A stretch of 64,000 bases of DNA from Geosiphon pyriformis uo1 (Eukaryota; Fungi; Glomeromycota). Position 1 is the first letter of the stretch. The number at the start of each line of letters is the position of its first letter. The stretch is taken from assembly GCA_016748015.1 (NCBI GenBank), contig JAAOMT010000226.1:850604-914603 (forward strand). Direction: 5' to 3'. The notes beneath the pieces are model-generated. The model worked only from the letters and a program-made list of their open reading frames with translations. It was not told where the DNA came from and did not search any database. Positions 1,511 through 64,000 of this stretch are shown here, piece after piece. The position numbers and the translations under genes are program-made.

Positions 1511-2939
1511 ATGAGGAATATTAAAAATTTTAACGTCCTTTTGTTCATTTTGATATTAGCTTGCATTTGCCAATCTTTTTCAAAACGGGAAATTTTTTCG
1601 GATATTGGAGATGTAAAATTATACTGCTTGGATTTGATCAAAATTCAAATCAAAAATCGTCTAAACTTTTAATTTTCAAAAATATCCCATAACTTACAGG
1701 TCAAAAGCCCAAAGTTTTTCAAAAATATCTCAAACAAGTCTAGGATAAACCAATTTTTACTTCCAAAGGGAAAATCATTCCTAAGTCGTATGACCAAATT
1801 TGTAATTTTCCTTATTGTTTTCCGCAAAATGAGATTGGAAAGATCGTAATGGAAAAAGATACTATCGGTAATTTCATTTTTACAGTAAATAGTTGATTTG
1901 GTTTAAAAAAAAAAACAGAATTTATTTTTTCACTGAGCATATGACACCATTTTTTGCACAATCACATCTTCATTTTGTAGCCGATATTATAGAAGAGGAA
2001 AATTTTCACAAATTATTACCTATTTTCGAGGGCCGATACTCAGCAGGGAACAATGGCTAGCGAGACCAGTTTCTTTAGCTCCGATTTATTGGGATAATTT
2101 CACACCCGAAAAAACTCTAGTTTATGCAACTTGGCTGGGAAATGTGGAAAAAATGATGCCTCTCTTATATGATAAAGTAGAAATAATGACTAAAAAAGAT
2201 ATAAGCATAGATTTTTCAATAGTTTTTGTTGGACATGGTATTGGAGGAGGTAAATTTTATCTTATAATAATTTAAAAGTTTTATTAGATTAAATGTGTAT
2301 AAAAAATTCTTTTACTCTCCTCAAGCCTATGCAGCTCTAGCGGCATTATCTTTTAACCATCTTTTATATCAAGAAAGAAGGCAAGTAGGCTTTCATACAA
2401 ATATTCGTTCAATAGGCGTGGTAACATTTGGTGCTCCTCGAATTGGGAATTTCCATTTTGTGAACTTGGTTTCGGGAGCATTTAAGAGCAGAAATGTCTA
2501 TCGAGTGACTCATTCAAATGATTGGGTTTCAAGAGAATTTCTGCCAAAAGGTAAATTTGTGCATTATAAACCGGAATATTGGTTAGCAAAGGGTGAGTGT
2601 GATTGTTCAAAATATTCTTCAGACAGGTTTTATGTGCATAAATGCGATTCCAAAGGAAATGAAAGTCAGGTAAGAATGAAATCAATCCTTGCAAAAAAAT
2701 ATTCATCATTCTTTTTAAAAAAATTTCATTCTCTCATGGTTCAAATTTTCTATTTCACTCAGATTCTAGTCTTTATAATTTTTAAACTAATATTATTTTA
2801 CTTTCTTTTTTAGGAATGTAATCTTGGCACGGTTGATTCAGAAAGCGAAAATAATCTCAATCCGAACATGGGTCCATTTCTCGGTATTATTTTCGCAAAC
2901 TGTACTGGAATAAAAAACTTATTTTTCAACCATGAATGA
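1511..2939 (+). pseudogene. Class-3 lipase-fold gene (nucleophile GHG variant), apparently frameshifted in its 5' exons
   Basis: Signal-peptide-like start (MRNIKNFNVLLFILILACIC). Lipase_3 motifs across introns (1868-1980, 2250-2325, 2670-2813): IITYFRG, VFVGHGIGG|AYAALAAL, VTFGAPRIGN, YRVTHSNDWV, HYKPEYW, ECNLG..NMGPFLG; stop at 2937-2939. The 5' part needs several frame changes, e.g. near homopolymers at ~1800 and ~2003, so it is either a pseudogene or has assembly errors. Confidence 0.7.
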
Positions 2940-3942: not shown

Positions 3943-5489
3943 ATTTTGCACAGTAAATGTTTTGATGTATAAGATTTTATGATTTGTATCATATCACATT
4001 AATTATTAATTATTGGTAGATATTCTCACACTTCGTGTTCTTTTTGTTGTTACGTACAAATACTAATTTTAGTTTTATGCCACAAAAAATGTCGGTTTTA
4101 AATGCAACGGTAATCATATGTAAACTGTTCAAAGGAATAAAATATTGCATGTTGATAAGATAAAGAAGGACAGTGGGGATGGACAGTTTTCAAAGGTCAT
4201 TGTGAAACAGAAAAATAGGTTTAAGATATGGTTAGTGGATGAATTAGAACAAGCAAGATCTGCTCATTTTTGTCAATCCGACATATGTCTGCCAAATATT
4301 TCTTTATAATTGAAAAATATATTTTAATTTCACGCATTTTTGAATTCTTTTTTCATAAATTCTGTCAGAAACTTTTTATATATCAATTCTGCTGCTCATA
4401 TGTTTAGGAGAGAACTTGCAATTATTTTATGACTTCATTGGTATATAAGCTATATTCGTGAAAAAAGCGGAAAATTTTTCTATTATAATGATGTGGCCAT
4501 TAATATAGTCATACGTTGATTAACCATAAAATCTTTAGGTCCATATTGACTCGAGAAACAGGTTAAAAATGTGTGCGTTAAATTTACTTTTTCGGATGAA
4601 ATGTGATTTATTGATGCTTTAATCAAAGATTTGATAATCAAAGTGAGCAGATAAGAATTCATCATTTGGATTCTGATGAGATCATAGCTCTTTGATTTAG
4701 TCCTTTGGCTACAACTCTTTTAGTCATAGAATTTTTTATGGAACATTCTATTTAATCACGGTTTCTCTGGAATTCCCATCATGTTGCCATTCTCGAAGAA
4801 TATGGCATTTTCAAAAATGAGTGAACTGGTCAAATGAAATAGGTTTACCATTTTTTACCGTCTTCCCCTCCTCCTCATCGATTGTTTTTATACGTATATA
4901 CCCTAGAATTGGTGAATTATTTTAGGATGGTCCCATTCATTAAAATAATTTACACAATTGGCTATGCTGTTTCAAAAGTTACACTTACCTCAATATTTTT
5001 TAATAGAAAGGAAATTTCCAAAGTCGTTAGCAGGATGATTATTTTGATACCCGATTTTCCTTATAACACTTCTTGTTTCGGAAAGATTTTCCCTCAAACC
5101 AACAATCACAATGATAAATTTCGCAATTCGAAGCATATCGCACGTGCTCATTCTCTTATTTAAAAAAATTGATGCAATAGTCTAGACAATTATGCAATTT
5201 TTTATTCACAATATTAAATTTAGCACCATAGTGGTTGATAGTTGGACACTTTCAAGACACGTGGTCCCTGCTACCTGCATCTTGCAGCCTTGTGAAATGG
5301 AGGATTTTCAGTTACATAAATATGGCAATGGGTTCTTTAAAAGCCTTGTTAAGCCAACTGAACACTCAACTAAATTTCGTATCTTGGTTTCGAAAATTCT
5401 TTTTTGTAAATTCACAAACTTTAGACACAATTTTACAATATTCAAGTGTAAAGAACAAAATTTTAATTGAAAAATTCTAGTTTGAAAAG

Positions 5490-6714
5490 ATGGAAAAACT
5501 TCAAGAAACCACAAAATTGATTAAACGCGAACGAATCTCAGGGACAAATACAAATTTAATATTTCAGTATGGGACTGAAATTAATTTTGAAGAGAAAGAT
5601 GATGGCGGTGATGAAGAACTCGTTTGGTATTTAGGTAAATCTTGGCAAAATAACTCAAAAGTTTTCTAAAGCTGATATTTCCAAAAACTTATTCACTATT
5701 TATTTTTCCTGCTATCCAAAGGATATGGCAGCAACATGAGTTCGAATACATTTACAGGTCGTCGAAAAGTTTATCCCTCACTTTCTTTCCCATGCTTCGT
5801 ACCTTCATACTTTCTTTCATTCGATATTGGTGGACAAAAGTATATGGAACCTTGTTTCGCAAATATAATGCGGTTTGAACCTCCTCCAACAGGCATAACC
5901 CGTGAATATGCGGAAAAAGTTCATAGTCACTGTGCAACAGGAACGCCGTTTATATGGAACGAAAAGAATCCTCAAGCAAGCTTACCACCCACACTACAAG
6001 GTGTAATACATCGAATAAAGCTATCAGAATATCGTCAAATTTTATTCACGGAGCCCCCCTTTGGTTGGGCTGATATCAAGACAGGTTATAAAGAAATTGA
6101 GGTCGAATGTGTGACTTATGATAACGAGGTCATATTGGCGAAAACTCTAATATCATTTCCGGGGCAGGAGAGACCTGGATCTCAAGCGTCAGAGAGGTAA
6201 TTATAAAAAATGATCATTTATTTGGGAGTCGAAAATTTTTTTGGACTATCTCTTACAAGTAATCTAATCCTTGTTATAATTTGTTGATTTCAAAAGATAT
6301 CTCAACATACTCCGAGATGGGGCAAAAGAACATCACATGGATCCAGAATACCGTTTATACTTATCACGATTGCAACCCTTCTTCCCACGAACGCTACGAA
6401 AGCGAATTGGCAAAACACTTTTTATGTTGTTATTTTTCCCTGTGTTGTACTTTTTATATTCAATCAGTATGTCCTGGATGAATAAGAGAAAACAGATTCC
6501 AAGATGGGTAGCTCTATCATTCTCAAATGTGAGAAAATTTTCGACACACGTACATGATTCTTTTTTTAAACCTGTTTTTGGGAGTGGTGAGTCAAATCTA
6601 GATGAACAAGGTGAAGATGAGGAACAGACATTAGATTATGAGGTGTTTGACAAAATAGATAATGTTAATTACATTATAGAAGAAAAGGCAGAGGGTAGAA
6701 GGGTTTTTTCTTGA
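5490..6714 (+). CDS. Gamma-glutamylcyclotransferase-like (GliK/AIG2-like) protein with C-terminal hydrophobic helix
   Basis: Spliced LVWYL|GYGSNM motif typical of the GGCT fold, then MEPCFANI, LQGVIHRI, SER|YLNILRDGAKE. Three exons; hydrophobic LFMLLFFPVLYFLYSISM near the C-terminus. Confidence 0.75.
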
Positions 6715-8271
6715 ATTTGGAATAGAAGCAGAATTACAATATTTCGAATATAATTTCATTTAAAAGTTTAATGTACATTTCATACCTAGTTGATCTATGT
6801 GTTGAGTTGGAAAGAGAGATTTTTTAATGGGAAATTTTTTTGTTTTAAATGTAAAGCTCAACTCTCAATATAAACAGAATTGAGAGTTTATCAATAACAA
6901 AGTAAAATAGCTTTCAATCTAGAAATCATTAGTTGTGCAGGCGTTACTAATTGAGCCTCTTAATAAAATTTTAATTTTTAAATATGGGAAAAAGAAAAAG
7001 AAAAAGAAAAAGAAAACCTCCTGAAAGTATAAATCTTTAAGTTCGCCCCCCCCCCAAACTTAATTGCTTATAGCATGTAAACTAACGCTAAATTGAGAGT
7101 TTATTATTCTTGTATTTGGCAAAAAACTTCGCGGTATAATTTTCGCTTTTGCATGCATACAGATTCTGTAATCGTTTGAAATTCATACGGGTAAGCTATT
7201 TTTGGCTCTTTGGGAGGTATGATCAATTAAAAATAGATTTTTTAATAAAAGCATGCATACAAAGACATCAAACTTGGCAATTACTTAATATAATTTGAAA
7301 AATGTTGAAAGAGAAGAAGAAATTTCAGCATTATAAACTTTAGAGGAATATTTAATTCACCTAGTCAATCAATTTGAGGTATTTACAAAAAAAAAATTGT
7401 ATTTCTCCCTCATTTAAATATTAAACGAGGAAAACGATATCATGCTTGATATAGAACAATGGACAATATTAACGATTAAAATAAATAGTTCAAACACTTT
7501 AATACATTATACATCTATCGATGACACTAATTCAAAGTGGCTGGGATCTCTCATCAACACAGTATTTTTAATTATTTAATTAATTAATGTATAAATGTAT
7601 CAGGTGGTTAGTTCTTTGTTTTTGGTAAATGCCAATTTTCACTGGTTAATAGTATAAAAATCTATGCACAATTCATTATGGAAAACTTTCTAAGGATTGC
7701 TTTGCAGAGTTATATACAAGTATGCAAGAAATCATAACTAGAAATAGCACAATCTTTAACTGGGGGGTTGGTCGCAGCAACTCTTGGCACTGCACAATAG
7801 CAATCCCTATCGTACGAAGTAAATAAAGTTGAAGCAAACTTTATTCATCTAACAGTAAAATGATAATTCCGTTCTATATCAAAAGTCAAATCTAGAGGAA
7901 TTCAATTTCTTAGATATTAAAAAAAATTTATCTCAAATGAGAATTTAATTAATCTGCATAAGGATGACTAAATTCTATTGTCAAGATTTCAATTATCCGA
8001 TAATTTGACCCTTCACGCAAGAAATGCCTGATTCTGTAAACCTTTTCCCCCCTTCATATCTTTATGAAACAATAAAAAAAATGCCAGTCCAATTAAAACG
8101 GGAAACCAGGTGTCACATTCTAGTTAAAGTTTCGTTTTTGTAGGGATTGAAAACCTTTTTATAACATTGACATAAGTTTTTCGCTAAAATATCTTTTTAT
8201 TTAATTTATGTCCTTTTGATACTTAGTCATAATTATTTGTTAAAGAAATTTCTCTTGTCATAGCTAAAAAG

Positions 8272-10173
8272 ATGAAAGCCGTATTTAGACTACTTCGAAA
8301 ATTCTTCATAGATCTTGTACCTGACCGTGAGACAGAACCAGGATTTCTGCGTGGTGTTAAATTTTTTTTCATGTATTCCATTTATATTGGGTGTTTGGGA
8401 TACATCATTTACCTTTCACGCGAAATTGTCACTGAAAACCCACATATCGAGATAACCTCTGAAACTAAACTTGAAGTACCTAGTCCATGTGAGTGGATGG
8501 AATTGCCAAATTTTTCTTTGAGCAAGTGAAATAAATTTTATGCTGAAAAGTTTACTCTCAATTTTCTTGCATCAATCTAGTTTTTCGGGTTGAATCACCG
8601 TTCTTTTTTACTATAAAATGCAATTTTTTGGATTCAAGTAAGCAACATCTCAGTTTAATATCATCCTAGTTTTTATAAAAATGTACAAACCTAAACAATT
8701 CGTGATATGAGATTAAAAATTTTATAATTTCAATCAGGCAACAAAATAATTGAAACTGTTGATTGTGACAAATATTTCGAACAACCAGAGAGTGCCTCGC
8801 CTTTTGCGAGATATTGGTCAACGTTGGATGAGAAAAATAAGCCACAAATTTATTTTTCGCCAGAAAAATATTTTGGAATGTATGTGGAAATTTTCGCTAA
8901 TGCTACGCCTAATGCCAATGCTGATTCTGGGGCGTTGGACAAATCATCAATAATAGTAACGTTTGCTGACGCTGGTAAGTGTTGATTTTGTGAGGTGATA
9001 TTTAACATGATTCGAGTTTTTTCAAACGAGAAATTACTCCTTCCTAGCATCAGAAGAGGTCGATTTTTCGAATGCCAAACCAGATACAGCTGTAGCCCGA
9101 ACGGAACAGATTATTTCGGAAAACAAATATGTCTTGTCACCTAAGCAGGTAAAAGATTAGGTTTTAATTAAGAAGTTTTCCATTGCCTTCATGTCTTTTT
9201 TACGATTGATAATATATTTTTAAATTCACTCTAATATCAGAGGCACATGTTTTGGTTCCGACGTATCCAGAAACAAGACCTAGATGGTCATAAGTGGAGA
9301 AATCGAGCTGGAGTTCAAAAGAAAACTAATGACTATTTTCAGATAACTTCCAGACTACGTTAGAGAATAATTTAATAATTTTGTCTATTCTTTAATACTT
9401 AAAAACGAGATCAAATGAAATTTCAATTTAGAAACGGTGAATCCTCAAAAGCCGGATGAATTTGCTCCTTATGCAACCATTGATATTCATTATCAGAGCC
9501 GTATTTTAGAAACGAACGAACAAAAAAAGTAGGTATTGAAATAATTGGAGCTGTTAATTGAATGAGCTTGAATAAACTAATTTTTTGAACTCCTTTCCAC
9601 TCATTTATTGAAAAAAAGGGATAAAACAGTAAGCCGTTATTGTCCAAGTTTTGAATTCTCGTTATCTTGGATTTTAATATATAAAATGACCTTTCCTTTC
9701 TCATTGTAGGTTTTGGCTTTATTAAGTACCCTTGGTGGTGCGTATGGTCTTGGTATTGCGGTTTACTGTTTCTGTTTCGGTAAGTTTTATTCTCTAGACT
9801 ATGCCTTTTCTAATTCCTAAGATTTCAAAACAATCATCTTGTTTCTCAACCTATTCTATCAAATCCAAAAAACTTTTTAGGCGCCTCACCATTAGGACCA
9901 TGGGGCTGGGCCCAAGAACTTCCGGGTATTCGACGAGCTTTGAAACGAAAACTTCGTCAATATTTTACTGATCACATCCCACTCGTCCATACAGCCAAAA
10001 CGGGGTCCGAGGATCCGGAGACCTTGAGACATGTCGAGCTTGTGGAACGTGTTTACGGGCTAGAAAGGAGAAGTGCATTATTGGAATTGTTACTGAAAGA
10101 ATATGTGGTTGATATTGGGGATTTAGAAGATTTGGCGAAGTCTAAGAATGATATAGATTTGGAGAAATCGTAG
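8272..10173 (+). CDS. Two-TM membrane protein, DEG/ENaC/PAC-like topology (paralog A)
   Basis: About nine GT-AG exons join in frame. TM1 (FFFMYSIYIGCLGYIIYL), ~220-230 aa loop with 2 Cys, then TM2 region ETNEQKKDKTVLALLSTLGGAYGLGIAVYCFCFG, a PWG motif, and a C-terminal coiled coil ending LLKEYVVD. Confidence 0.75.
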
Positions 10174-13100
10174 ATTTAAGTCTATATTTTAGCTATGCAT
10201 TCACAAAAACAAATTTACCCGTCCGAGGAATCATGAAAGGAAAAATTGGGGCTAGAAGCATTATTATGAATTTGAATATTTAGAGGTATTCACCAAAATG
10301 TATGAGCGATCGTCTCGTTCATTTTCTATTTAAATTTTTGATTATTTTAAATTGAGATAAAAGCAGTTTAACCTAAAAAGGTTGACATCTTGTAAGTGAG
10401 ACAAAGTCTTTTAATTGGTCGATTGGATTCAAAATTTAGACTAGTTCAATTTAAAAAGGGAACTCAATTTTCAAAGAACTTGAGGATTTGCATGAATAGA
10501 GGATAGGGAGAATTTTATTTCAGCCCCCTTGATTTATTTGAAATTGACAATTTTATCGTTATGTAAGAGTTCGGGACTTTAAGGCTTTCATGTAAATAGT
10601 CGGCTTTTTCTTTTAATTAAATCTTTTGGTTCGACAATTTTTCTTTAACATGAATAATTGAATACATGCGCATCTTTAAATAGGTAGTGTAATGCAAAAA
10701 TTTAATAGCCGTTTTCAATGAGAAAGATATCGTCATCGCAATACTGAAAATTTCACCTTTTTATAAAGAAATTTAAAAATTTTAAAAATTAAAAGCCTGA
10801 AGAACGTGCAAGTCTACCAATTATATAAAATGGTGCTTGCTTTTCGAGATGTTTTATTATTATTTGTGAATTGGATTATGCTACTAAATAATCTTTGTAC
10901 TTTTCTATTGAGTGAAAAAATTAAATGTTTCATAGGAATGCGCAGAAATTAGGATTAATTTCGAGAGCTTAGTTTTTATAAAGAAAATCAAATAATGATA
11001 CATTCTGTGATCAAAGCTGCCACAAATTTATTAATTTGTGGAAGAAATGAAACCAATCATTTTTAAAACTCTTGACATCCATTTTAATTCTGGGAAAAAC
11101 ACCAATAAAGTAAAATAATCCGATCCACATTAGCATGATCGCGAAAGAAGAAAATGTCAGGTTTAGTGGAACCAATTAAACTCCATGAAATTTCATGCAT
11201 GTGAGTTTATTGAAGTTAAACATATTGTGATCAATAAATTAGTTGACTAATCACGCGCTTGAAATCGTGAGTCAAATAAATATAAAGTTAGAGATTCAAA
11301 GGGTAAAATAATTGAATCATTTTAACTTGAAACTTCGAGCCATATTTTCTTTATAAATACACTCTTTTAAACCATCACATATTCAAAACCCGGAAGAACT
11401 TCTAAAAAAAAACTTTGAACGCAATAAAACTCAAAGATTTGCAAGCGAAATATGGCACTACAACTTATCATTTTTTTCATAATGTTATTCTCGACTATTA
11501 TTTCTCTGGATAAATTTTTTGAACAAGAGAGGCTCAAAAAAAAGGCTGCTAAAAATCGACAACGACGGACTTTAAGTAGAGATTATAATGACCAAAGAAT
11601 AGCAATAACTAAAATTTCTGAGAAGGCGAAATAAAAGTTTTTGGTAAGTTATTTGGCTGTAAAGAAGATTTTTAAATGATGTTGAGTCTCTCAAAAAGGT
11701 TTTATTTCCATAGCCAATTTAATTTTAACTCCTTGGATTCACGGTAATAATGGAAATAGGTCCTCTAAAACAGTTAAATTAATTGTGTGAGTGTGCCTTT
11801 GATAGCTCTATTACCAGCATAGTATAATTAACGTTTTAAATAATGCTTCGAATTTCTTTATCAAGAGTCTAGAATTTGAATTAATTGATTTCATTTTAAA
11901 AACAAGATTGGCCAGCAAACTTTAGTCAATATGAAAATTTTTAATTCATAAATTGAGGATGAACAATTTATCTTTTCGTAAAAACGGAATGAATTATTCC
12001 AAGAAAAACACTTGTGCTTAAAGCGTTATTTTCCATAGTTTAAACTTTGTATTTTAGCTATAAATTATGGTTTGGTACGATTTGCGAAAAGTTAAAAAAT
12101 CGAATACAGACCTACCTATTTTATAAATTCGTGCTGATAAAATTTAAGGTGTATCAAAAATCTTGATCATTATTATGTTTACAGACTCCCAGATTATTTC
12201 GTAGCGAAGAAAGAAGTTGACTTTCCATCATGTCTGAACGAGAATTAAGATGATCTGTGCGCTGTCTCAAAACGGACAAAAGAGATGGTACTACCATTTC
12301 AAGAAATCGTTAGAATTTGTGGACTTCCACAAGCAGATGACACAGAATGATCTGCGATCTCTTGTTAAAACTTCGTGAAGTCAGCAACTGGTATTTGCAA
12401 AAACATGGTGAGCGCATTCTTTTCTTGTGAGCTTTTAAAGAAGTTAGGTTAGAACATCTCTTTATCCAGAGGGGCTGATGGATTGCTGTCTTGAGCGTAA
12501 ACTGCTTGCACAGTTGGTATTATAGTAATTGTCATTCCCTATGGAACTAAATTTGTTCTCTTTTATAATATTTTTCATTCAAAGAGAAAAGTTCTAAAGG
12601 AAGGTGGACCCTTGGTGCAGTGCGGAGAGAACATCAATATCTCAAAGCACAAGAGACATTGAATATGGCAAAGGACTCATCAACGCAAGTAATATGGATT
12701 GTGATATAAAATTGAGCAGTAGTTCGTAACGAAAAAACCGGAAGAGGGAAATAGACGGAGCTCAACTCCAAAGTGGCAATCCCACCAACATGTTAAATAA
12801 AAACCACCTCGAGGATTTGTACGATATTAATGTATTGAAACATAGTAGGGATAGAATTGGTAAGGTACGTGGCTCCTGTGACTACCATAATTGCGTCTGT
12901 GTATACTTTGGCGTTCATCTTTTTACAATCCTTTTTGCTTTACACAGAAAGGAATCAACGGCAATGGTAACAATAATAGTGACGACAACAAGGAAAAACT
13001 GTAAGAGAACAATAATGGGGAATCGTTTATATAGCATATTCCGAACAGATGTTGAAGATGTCAAATGCATTACGGCAACAAAGTGGGCTCACCGACGCTC

Positions 13101-25864: not shown

Positions 25865-27760
25865 ATGTTAGGACTTTTCAAAAACCGTCGAAAGTCAGAG
25901 CCTATGAGTTTGCACTATTCTAAAGTGTTTCTTTTTATTTTTATTTATTTTGCTATTGGTGGTTATTTTTCAATTTTACTCTGGCAATCTGCAACTGAGC
26001 ATCCCACATTGACTCAGAAAAGAGACTATCCGCAATTGATTCAGGCGCCAAGTATGCGAATAATTTTTAGCAAGAACTCAATTAAAAGATTGGTTTAAAA
26101 ATTGTTCGATTTGAATCTACCCAATAATTTTAACACGTTTTCTTTGATTTATCGTTACGTTAGGTTCACAATTTCAATTCGATTACAATTTTCGTCTAGC
26201 TTGTAAAATTTACAACTTTAATTCTCGTAAGTTTTGACTTTAATCTCAAATCAACATTGATTTTTGCACTTTGACCAATTCTCTGTTTGCTTTTCTTCAG
26301 AGAGCACTCCAATATTAGAAGACCAGTGCTCACAATATCTAATACAGCCAAAATTGTATCGCGGCATAGGATGGGTAGGGTTCTTTTTTGCGAAAAGAAA
26401 TTTACAATTTGCCGGTGCGAGTCATGATGGGGTCTATAAGATTGAAATTAACGTCTTTTTGGATGATGGCAATTATAATAAGACTAATGATCGTTTGATG
26501 GTATGTAAAAACAGTAGTGATTTTTTTTAAAAATTCTCATGTGCTTATTTTTTACTCTTTCATGCAGGCAATCAGATTGTTTGATTCAGGAATGTAATTT
26601 ATTTAGGATAGAGAACATTGCTGTTTTAAAACTCTATTGACATTTCGATTTTAAATTTTAGATCCAGAATATGAAGATATTGAGCCAGAGGTTGATGGAC
26701 AACCATCGGAGGTCGATAATCTGAATCTTTATGTTCTTGGTCCTGCACAGGTAATTAAGTGAATTTCTTACCTTCCATTTTACAATCATTAATTTTTCCC
26801 ATTGTTCTTGATTTTCCTTTCAGGCTCACTATATAAACTATAGAAGATTCCTAAACGAAACTTTAGTCAGTAGTTGGCTCAACACTTTTGGCATTCCACC
26901 GATACAAATGAATAGAGAATATTTTGTGACATCAAATTTTAGTGAGTTTAATGAAAATTAATTGCTTATCAGAAGATAAAATTAAGCTTTTTTTTTTGAT
27001 ATTTTAGACAGCGTACCAATTATAGGCAATACTGTAGAAAATAAATATGCTTTTATATCTATAAAGCTACAGTCTACTGAAATAGATACATTTACCGAAA
27101 GAAGGTAAGGAGACTCGGCAGGTCAATTTTTCAATGCTTTTACTAATAAATTATTTTGTAAAATCTTTATTGGTATATTTGAAGGAATCAAACGGTACGC
27201 TTTGTCTTTTTTTTTTGGCATTTCAATTGCGATATAGTCAACCAATTTTCCCATTTCAATTTTTTAGATTTTAGTAATATTCAGCTCTCTCGGTGGCGCA
27301 TTTACATTTGGATTAGGGATATATACTCTTCTATTCGGTAAAATATTCGAGTTTTTATAATTCTACAAGAATCTGCCTTTTGACGAAAAATTCAAATCTT
27401 TTTGCTTTCACATCGTCATTTTTAGGCGCATTTCCATTCAAACCATGGGGTCTAGCCCAAAAATTGCCTAGAGTTCGAGGAAAAGTACAATCAAAATTGC
27501 GCAAGATGTACGGCTCTCATGGTCCTCTCCCCCGAATCCCAGTTAAATCAGACCTAACCAATATTCGCGACCCCACCAACCATGTTATATCAACTGACTT
27601 TGAAGGTAGCATCCAGGATTCTCTAAACTCCCTAGCACGACGTCAGTATAATATAGAAATGTTTTTGAGTGAGTATGTAGTTGACACAGACTTTGTGGAT
27701 GCTATGGACAGTGATAATGCTAAAGGATGGGATAATAAAGAAATAGTTGAGAATGTCTAG
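25865..27760 (+). CDS. Two-TM membrane protein, DEG/ENaC/PAC-like topology (paralog B)
   Basis: Same architecture and mostly shared intron positions as 8272-10173. TM1 VFLFIFIYFAIGGYFSILLW; TM2 region DTFTERRNQTILVIFSSLGGAFTFGLGIYTLLFG; KPWG; C-terminal FLSEYVVD. One intron needs a GA donor. Confidence 0.72.
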
Positions 27761-61700: not shown

Positions 61701-64000
61701 ATTAAATAAAAATAATATAATATTTATTTTTTAATTAAACACCAAAAAATTTAATACTATTTTTTCATTAAAATTAATTAAACTAAAACAAATATAACAA
61801 CAATATAAAACTTAAAATAAACAATAATATATTGTTTAATACTAATAAATTTCAACATAATATTAAAAATTTTACTAAAAACATTAAAAATATTTTTAAA
61901 ATTATTAATTAAAATATTTTTAAAAATTATTAAAAACTTAACAATCTTAAAAATAAACAAAAAAAGTAATCTAACCAATTTAATTTGTATAATAACATTT
62001 AAAAAACTTAATATTATCTTTAATTATTAATTATAAATCAAAAAAAAACTATATAAAAACTAAAATATAGTTTTAACATAAATTATTTTAATCTTTGCAA
62101 TTTTATTAAATATTAAAATAAATATTATTAGAAACAGTATTTTTAAAAAACAAAAAAATGCTTTAGTATTCTAATTAATTTAATTTTTAAAATTAGATAA
62201 TTTAATAAATTAATTATTTAAAGTTATATAAAACAACATAATTTGTTTAATTTTTAAAACTAAAAATGATTAACTAAAATTTAATAGATTAAGCAATTCA
62301 ATTATGTATTAATTAAAACTAGTTTTAACAAATATATTATTGCTATTAATATTTAAAAAAAATAACTGTTGTTTATAACGAAATTTAAATTGAATATTAT
62401 AATTGATATAATTATAAAATCGATATAAATATTAAAAAAACCAAGTAAAGTTAATATTTTATTTTTTATAAAAAGAAACAAACTTTAAAATATAAATAAT
62501 ACTCTAAAAATACCAAAAAATAACTTTTTTTAAGTATTTTAAAAAATTAATAATTTTAAAAAAAGAAAAAAAGTTGTTTCTTTACTCTTTTAATTTTTTT
62601 GGTTATTTAAATAAATATAAAAAAAATAATAAAAGAAAGCTTGTTAAAAATTCTAAATTTTTTATAGAAATAACAACTATATAAAAACTAGTTTTAATTA
62701 GCTATTTAAAAAAAATTATAAAAAAAATTTTTAACCAAAAACAAAATTAGTTTATTACTATTTTATTTAAAAATTATTCTTATAGAATATTATTAAACAA
62801 TTTTAACAATTATAAATGCTTTATTAATAAAAATATTATTAAATATTTTAGAAAATAAAAGAATTGCAATTTTTTTACTCTTTGTTTTAAATGTAATTAT
62901 AAAATACAAAAAAAAAAGCTTTTTTTTTAATTATTTTAAAACTTTTATTAATTTTATAAATATTTAAAAAATAATATTAAATTAACAATTATAAGATCAT
63001 ATTTGTTTATAAATTTTTTTTTATGTTTTTATAATTATAAGTAAAACAAAAAATAAAAAAAGGCAAAATTTTTTTTATTGCTGCTTAAATAATTAAAAAA
63101 ACAAAAAAACAAAATCTTTTTTTTTCAAACTTAAAACAAACAACTTTTTTGAATTATTAATAAAAATATTTTTTAATGTTTTTTAAAATAGTATTTTGTT
63201 TTAAAATCTGTCTTTTTTTTTATAAAAAATGAAACATTAACTTTTTTTGCTATTTTTACCAATTTTGTTATAATTACTGTAATTATAATTTCTATTATTA
63301 ATTTGTTTATAAATAATTATTTTTTTAATTTAAATAATATTATTAATAATATATTATTGAAGTTAGTTTTAATTAATATATAATTAAATTGCTTAATATT
63401 TTAAATTTTAGTTAATTATTATTAATTTTAAAGCAAAACAAGATATATTTTTATATATAATTTTTATCAATTAATTTATTAAGTTATTTAATTTCAAAAA
63501 TTAAATTAATTAAATAGAAATAAATTTTTTTTTTGTTTTTTAAAAATATTGCTAGTTTTATTAATATTTAAAAAAAAGTTATTAATTAATAAAAGTTTTA
63601 TTAATAGATAGTTTTTATTTAATATTTAATAAAATTATTAAAATTAAATTAATTTATGTTAAAACTATTATTACAAATAATATAACTTTTAGTGTTTAAT
63701 TATGTAATATTAAACTTTAAAAGTTTTGGTATTTTGAAGATTTTTATAGTATTAAAAAATTTTAAGAATTTTTTCTAAGTAATTTATTTGTAAAAATATT
63801 TTTTATAAAAAATAAAATATTTAAGTTTTTTTTTATGAAATAATATTATTAATAGTTAATAATTAATTGGTTTATTATAATTTTTAATTGAATTTAATTT
63901 ATATTATTCAATTATAATTAATAAAATCTATTTAAAATTAATTCTAAAGTGTATTTTCTCTTTTATTTAACTATTATAATATAAAATTACTTATTAATCA
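61700..64000. other. Extremely AT-rich degenerate tract
   Basis: Very low GC, no credible ORF. Confidence 0.7.

Follow-up and report, generated by a model that had tools for sequence, protein, structure and literature searches.

We analysed a 64,000-nucleotide stretch of DNA (the window; contig JAAOMT010000226.1, positions 850,604 to 914,603) from Geosiphon pyriformis, a member of the Glomeromycota, order Archaeosporales, and a fungus that houses cyanobacteria. Its sequence is eukaryotic with 29% G+C, and positions 8272-10173 of the forward strand hold a nine-exon gene whose 1,200 coding nucleotides specify 399 amino acids and a stop codon. To obtain the gene model, the forward frames of 8200-10250 were read and spliced at GT..AG sites; all eight introns have these ends and are 73 to 101 nt long. 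A preliminary description of the same DNA had spliced by hand a protein of ~400 amino acids from short exons, and the model bears this out. The exons and the parts of the protein that they are predicted to encode are the following.

8272..8488 (+), exon 1: aa 1-73, cytosolic N terminus, first transmembrane helix (TM1, coded by ~8353-8418) and start of the ectodomain; an ATG-initiated ORF whose N terminus can be aligned with Ambispora homologues
8489 (+), exon 1 donor: GTGAGT; the junction 8488/8581 is present in a spliced contig
8581..8637 (+), exon 2: 57 nt, aa 73-92, beta-hairpin that follows TM1 and contains a conserved Cys; present in the contig
8738..8974 (+), exon 3: aa 92-171, outer and variable region of the ectodomain; contains Cys101 and the sole N-glycosylation sequon (N146)
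9048..9148 (+), exon 4: aa 171-204, part of the ectodomain; contained in the spliced contig
9241..9358 (+), exon 5: aa 205-244, ectodomain, long palm-like strands
9432..9528 (+), exon 6: aa 244-276, final long strand (beta12-like), which bears the ASIC-like motif
9619..9628 (+), exon 7: 10-nt microexon, aa 276-279, linker from beta12 to TM2, its residues kept in homologues
9710..9779 (+), exon 8: aa 280-303, second transmembrane helix (TM2) with the family-invariant L-S..G-G and a later G; can be aligned with TM2 of ENaC beta and ASIC1/2
9881..10173 (+), exon 9: aa 303-399 and stop, GPWGW interfacial motif, basic stretch and helical cytosolic tail; the tail is conserved and specific to this subfamily

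When the exons were scanned singly against Pfam, none of them, including exon 9, gave a match, and a search of the genome with exon 3 alone gave no further match.

The splicing was compared with public transcript data. One public run (X1) contains a 1,076-nt contig that matches 8389-10155 at ≥99% identity and omits exactly the eight introns, so that all eight junctions of the hand-made model are reproduced by a single spliced contig. Between 9529 and 9710 the contig has nine additional letters that equal 9620-9628, which shows that the microexon is real. Read depth in the same run was nil in all bins lying wholly in introns or in the flanks. Although the library type of this run is not recorded, a contig made of exons only and joined at GT..AG sites is as expected from cDNA, and the gene is expressed. 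Given that the contig leaves the first 117 nt of the coding sequence uncovered, the start codon was placed by alignment with homologues.

The preliminary description had noted that short exons hide the gene from a list of open reading frames. GenBank, however, already lists it as a G. pyriformis hypothetical protein (KAG9301217.1, 380 amino acids, referred to here as P0001), a 100% match that is identical to the 399-aa model except for 19 missing residues, those of exon 2. We regard the 399-aa form as the better model, since exon 2 is in the contig, is kept in the Ambispora proteins and corresponds to the most confident part of a structural model: its equivalent in the Ambispora homologue P0004 has the top pLDDT (84 to 88) of the whole prediction. 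Because exon 2 counts 57 nt, skipping it leaves the reading frame intact, and the join from exon 1 to exon 3 in KAG9301217.1 could stem from a mistake in annotation or from a minor isoform that really exists; the sole transcript contig at hand contains exon 2.

A basic segment (aa 1-27) opens the protein, and hydropathy locates the two helices at roughly aa 28-49 (TM1) and aa 279-305 (TM2). The loop between them (aa 50-278, ~230 amino acids) has a single N-X-T sequon, N146, and only two cysteines, Cys86 and Cys101. The net charge is positive N terminal of TM1 and right after TM2, and negative after TM1. Hydropathy, charges and the sequon agree in predicting a topology in which both termini are cytosolic, two helices span the membrane and ~230 amino acids lie outside it, the same order of short N terminus, TM1, loop of ~220 to 230 amino acids, TM2 and tail that had been proposed earlier. 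The C-terminal tail (~95 amino acids), proposed earlier to be a coiled coil, is conserved and comprises G-P-W-G-W, then basic residues and a helical segment that is likewise conserved, its helicity being a low-confidence model prediction. Across the family, invariant alignment columns are concentrated in TM2 and directly after it (T, L-S, G-G, G, P-x-G); of the 17 columns that are invariant, five (T, L, S, G and G) lie near one another in the beta12 strand and TM2. The family also retains (I/V)-P-(A/S)-P after TM1, with a Cys ~15 residues further on.

To gain an idea of the distribution of this family, we searched 1.8 billion representative proteins by phmmer with the last exon. This yielded 11 proteins, of which 10 are relatives, including an unnamed fragment of 125 amino acids (P0011), and one is a spurious match to a TPR kinase. 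The other, named relatives come from Geosiphon, Ambispora gerdemannii and A. leptoticha. Word-based protein searches with P0004, with the family profile A1 and with the ORF of a Geosiphon paralog (L018) found no family member outside Geosiphon and Ambispora. Within the 128-Mb Geosiphon genome, a profile search places the family at at least 10 loci, two of which are located as follows.

27422..27718 (+), diverged tail exon of paralog B: ~17 kb downstream in the same window; 36% identity by tblastn
L018:1474-2523 (-), region of G000:C718:907363-907731: intronless paralog of 350 amino acids, 17% identical

The tail exon of paralog B was found in genome searches with E values of 1.3e-5 and 3.3e-11, and homologues match 26827-27724 as well. 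The intronless paralog corresponds to a public model (P0013, hypothetical protein) that counts 209 amino acids against the 350 of the L018 ORF and was therefore probably shortened during annotation. In the ESM Atlas, searches by language-model features and by shape give P0004 and P0001 as neighbours four unnamed clusters (59, 66, 103 and 111 members) and a cluster of 193 members in which 1,002-aa proteins carry a fused Kelch propeller. All of these clusters are labelled Mucoromycota, and it is from these labels that a wider spread of the family is read. The closest named Atlas family by features is PF27811 (Y80K_N).

In the paralog L026 (G000:C718:1420500-1427500; ORFs 2237-2614 and 4172-5983), the tail exon runs into a low-complexity extension of ~550 amino acids that is rich in Ser, Gly and Thr and built of repeated units. 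In P0007 from A. gerdemannii (631 amino acids), a SAM-methyltransferase domain (aa 40-200) is joined to the channel-like module, and TM2 contains a 20-aa insert; this has the look of an error in the gene model, by merging or mis-splicing, and not of a true fusion.

A sequence link to a known family lies in the segment that runs from the last strand of the ectodomain into TM2. Residues 225-290 of P0001, searched by phmmer against all PDB sequences, gave 10 matches at E ≤ 10, all of them ASIC1 or ASIC2 chains (E 0.07 to 1.4), in ungapped alignments with 16 (ASIC1) or 17 (ASIC2) identities in 38 positions. The ungapped ASIC1 alignment that the preliminary description had given, with ~15 identities in 37 positions, is thus real, and the string that it used is present in the protein. 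The shared motif of beta12 and TM2, which is common to DEG/ENaC channels, comprises D-I, E-T, EQKK, LL, GG and GL, and its LL..GG..GL part aligns without gaps with ASIC1/2, ENaC beta, FaNaC1 and BRTNaC1. The equivalent segment of P0007 matched only ENaC beta and FaNaC1 in the PDB. The family profile A1, run against 177,635 PDB sequences, had residues 492-537 of human ENaC beta as its top match (E 0.013, bias 0.1), and for a second profile (A2) ENaC beta, FaNaC1 and BRTNaC1 account for 6 of the 10 matches. The bias term was 0.0 to 0.1 for the matches of both profile A1 and the P0001 segment.

Pfam gave the same picture. PF00858 (ASC) was the sole Pfam match in 7 of 11 family members, always at positions 398-445 of the 455-position model, with scores of 13.0 to 22.4 bits that all lie below the gathering cutoff of 23.6 bits; P0001 scored 15.1 bits (E 0.012) and the best relative, P0007, 22.4 bits (E 7.3e-5). 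A six-frame search of the genome with PF00858 gave no match, as the exons are too short for it. Full-length P0001 had no match among PDB sequences, and the segment after TM1 had only chance matches there, none of them to DEG/ENaC proteins; the earlier suggestion that the proline after TM1 occupies the FPxxTxC position thus finds no support. Taken over all searches, no PDB match reached E < 1e-3, no Pfam match reached the curated cutoff, and the matched stretch spans ~45 residues, so that the sequence evidence lies in the agreement, on one small family at one site, of matches none of which is significant by itself. Judged by sequence, the alignment to ASICs is weak alone, yet specific to one family, and a DEG/ENaC-like motif persists in the beta12 strand and in the outer half of TM2. 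As a side observation, PF00858 matched above the cutoff in Thermotoga maritima, which served as a control genome, suggesting that some prokaryotic sequences are recognised by the ASC model.

We then turned to the predicted fold, for which two relatives stand in for the 399-aa protein of the window: the homologue P0004 and the paralog L018. P0004 (Ambispora, 408 amino acids, full length, 40% identical) was modelled with AlphaFold2 without templates from an alignment of 10 sequences. The model has a pLDDT of 60.4 and a pTM of 0.46, with residues 71-160 at pLDDT 72 to 88, and DSSP assigns 12 strands between the helices H32-62 and H290-312. Confidence in the models is modest, the underlying alignments counting 10 or 11 sequences. 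A Foldseek search of the PDB with the P0004 model placed the proton-activated chloride channel PAC/ASOR/TMEM206 at ranks 1 to 20 (E 3.5e-11 to 9.3e-9) and DEG/ENaC-family chains (ASIC1/2 and PDPNaC1, mostly ASIC1) at ranks 21 to 50, from E 2.3e-8 onward. With VIA-align, an aligner independent of Foldseek, against 48,161 chains, ranks 1 to 11 were likewise all DEG/ENaC or PAC (PDPNaC1, ENaC, PAC, FaNaC, ASIC5, ASIC1 and BRTNaC1; Z 12.3 to 9.4), PDPNaC1 and BRTNaC1 being DEG/ENaC channels of centipedes; below them came Erv41p (Z 8.4, 163 residues aligned) and then helical proteins at Z ≤ 7.0. A further VIA-align search gave 92 chains at Z ≥ 8, the best 50 of which all belong to the PAC or DEG/ENaC families, and the ectodomain alone superimposed on ENaC beta with Z 11.3 and an rmsd of 3.8 Å over 163 residues. 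The ESM Atlas, an independent predictor that has its own model of P0004, related it to a TMEM206 cluster (TM 0.44/0.48) and an ASC cluster (TM 0.52/0.55). The intronless paralog L018 gave a weaker model (pLDDT 54.6), for which the best 20 Foldseek matches were all PAC/ASOR and VIA-align returned nothing over Z 5. Foldseek, VIA-align and the Atlas, applied to P0004, support the preliminary description in its picture of a minimal protein with the DEG/ENaC/ASIC fold, PAC-like in size and lacking the thumb. P2X receptors, which likewise have two transmembrane helices per subunit and form trimeric channels, had been considered as another match; they are not among the matches of the better, P0004 model, and since the weaker L018 model gives them only E 0.03 with a probability of 0.21, we rejected them.

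TMEM206, ASIC and ENaC are known to share a core of 12 strands with two flanking transmembrane helices and no detectable sequence homology (Deng et al., PMC7904269), and the fungal family resembles each of them in a different way. PAC (PACC1; PF15122), a proton-activated chloride channel described as conserved in vertebrates (PMC7904269), is of similar size (~350 to 400 amino acids), places its two helices around a compact 12-stranded beta-domain with neither thumb nor Cys-rich domains, and is the best Foldseek match of both models; with the P0004 model, VIA-align gives it Z 10.2 to 11.0. It has an anion-filter lysine near the inner end of TM2 (PMC7904269), whereas TM2 of the fungal protein (aa 279-305) has no such lysine and no charged residue at all, the first basic residues following ~14 residues beyond. 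A further difference is the cytosolic tail, which is long and conserved in the fungal protein; the extreme C terminus of TMEM206 is described as lacking conservation among orthologs and as probably unstructured (PMC7904269). PF15122 had no match at E ≤ 10 in the 11 members. The one match of the TMEM206 profile in the genome (contig C627, E 0.74) is an unrelated AT-rich spot that is not a family member by its DNA, and it was discarded.

The DEG/ENaC/ASIC family (PF00858) shares the core fold and the topology (VIA-align Z 9.0 to 12.3 against PDPNaC1, ENaC, ASIC1/2/5, FaNaC and BRTNaC1), the structural alignments spanning 160 to 240 residues of DEG/ENaC chains that count 400 to 520. Compared with these channels, the fungal ectodomain is ~140 residues shorter, lacks the thumb and has two loop cysteines instead of Cys-rich domains; its Pfam scores stay under the gathering cutoff. 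An HG motif before TM1 is absent from aa 1-50 of the model and from the aligned N termini of P0004, P0008 and P0012. As the preliminary description had noted, the GAS filter is missing from its aligned place: the residues at the GAS/GxS position are A-V-Y, although a G-A-S tripeptide follows seven residues downstream (aa 303-305), of which the family conserves only G-A. Animals and a few protists are known to have DEG/ENaC channels, and a BLAST search of Fungi found none (Elkhatib et al., PMC10507113); in the literature that we searched, there was no report of fungal relatives of PAC or DEG/ENaC.

Given these likenesses, we consider it fairly probable that the family adds a new fungal branch to the PAC-DEG/ENaC fold and that its members form trimeric channels lined by TM2. 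It is best read as PAC-like in size and simplicity and DEG/ENaC-like where the sequence remains readable, and since it departs from both named families in several of the features that define them, we file it as a member of neither. Two observations lead us to propose a trimeric channel: the proteins of this core that have solved structures are all channels of this kind, and no other part of the family is as constrained as TM2. Three subunits, identical or drawn from paralogs, would surround a central pore lined by TM2, with the invariant small residues (L-S..G-G, then G) serving helix packing and crossing. A stimulus from outside could move the lower beta-domain and open the pore through the connections of beta1 and beta12 to the membrane helices, while the conserved cytosolic tail may bundle or regulate the trimer. 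The sequence gives no indication of ion selectivity: it lacks the HG motif, a GAS in register with the filter and a PAC-type lysine in TM2.

The same fold could also serve a membrane receptor, sensor or scaffold that conducts no ions, whose ectodomain binds a ligand or partner and whose cytosolic tail signals. Such a role would fit the tail, which surpasses all other long stretches in conservation and is confined to the subfamily, as well as the missing canonical selectivity motifs and the Atlas proteins in which the module is fused to Kelch propellers, an architecture more like that of signalling or adaptor proteins. On the other hand, the clustering of 5 of 17 invariant columns in TM2 and the preceding strand, together with the DEG/ENaC outer-pore motif found there, would not be expected of a mere membrane anchor, and this core has been solved only in channels, so that we hold this alternative to be rather improbable, if still to be reckoned with.

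We give much less weight to a relationship with the two-helix cargo receptors of the early secretory pathway (Erv41/Erv46/ERGIC type; PF07970 and PF13850), which also place two transmembrane helices around a beta-rich domain, here a lumenal beta-sandwich. Their topology is alike, Erv41p is the first match beyond the channel families in VIA-align, and the shape search of the Atlas returns ERGIC and COPIIcoated_ERV clusters with TM 0.38 to 0.48. Nevertheless, 11 channel representatives outrank Erv41p, no Erv or ERGIC chain is among the best 50 Foldseek matches, no member matches ERGIC_N or COPIIcoated_ERV in Pfam at E ≤ 10, and these receptors are without the DEG/ENaC-like TM2 motif, the sequence thus favouring DEG/ENaC; this origin seems very unlikely. 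A somewhat larger, still small chance is left for a lineage-specific protein with two transmembrane helices that is unrelated to channels, its motif being due to chance and its fold an artefact of shallow alignments. Every sequence match is indeed below threshold, pLDDT values are only 55 to 60, and the L018 model fails in VIA-align. However, different members and profiles, two structure predictors and two structural aligners agree on two related families and almost nothing else, and the HMMER bias terms are close to zero, all of which argues for the channel fold.

If the fungal family does belong to the PAC-DEG/ENaC fold, as we favour, a further reading concerns its history. The usual view takes DEG/ENaC channels to have arisen in animals, with a few outliers among protists, and the likeness of PAC to ASIC and ENaC has been called structural convergence (PMC10507113, PMC7904269). 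Given that the fungal proteins combine a minimal, PAC-like ectodomain of 12 strands with DEG/ENaC-type sequence from beta12 to TM2, we tentatively raise the possibility that they are a living intermediate, that PAC/TMEM206 and DEG/ENaC are divergent homologues and not convergent, and that the channel core existed at or before the split of animals and fungi. If so, the Glomeromycotina would hold a diversified set of channels with gating and selectivity of their own, some fused to Kelch propellers or equipped with a dedicated cytosolic tail. An expressed and sizeable fungal family with this core and a remnant of the motif would push the origin of the architecture to the opisthokont ancestor or beyond, and with it one could test whether convergence or common descent accounts for the likeness. 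The small, thumbless subunits would offer a means to study what a bare beta-domain and TM2 are able to do. For mycorrhizal biology, in which the symbiotic interfaces of these fungi are acidic and transport intensive, the family represents a candidate pathway for ions that has not yet been studied.

Some other features of the window were observed along the way. Upstream of the gene, an ORF at 2295-2813 (+) carries a class 3 lipase domain (Pfam Lipase_3, E 4.8e-9) and is probably one exon of a larger upstream gene. At the far end of the window, short AT-rich tandem repeats (61859-61936) lie just upstream of a 2-kb tract (62001-64000) that has ~10% G+C and contains no N.
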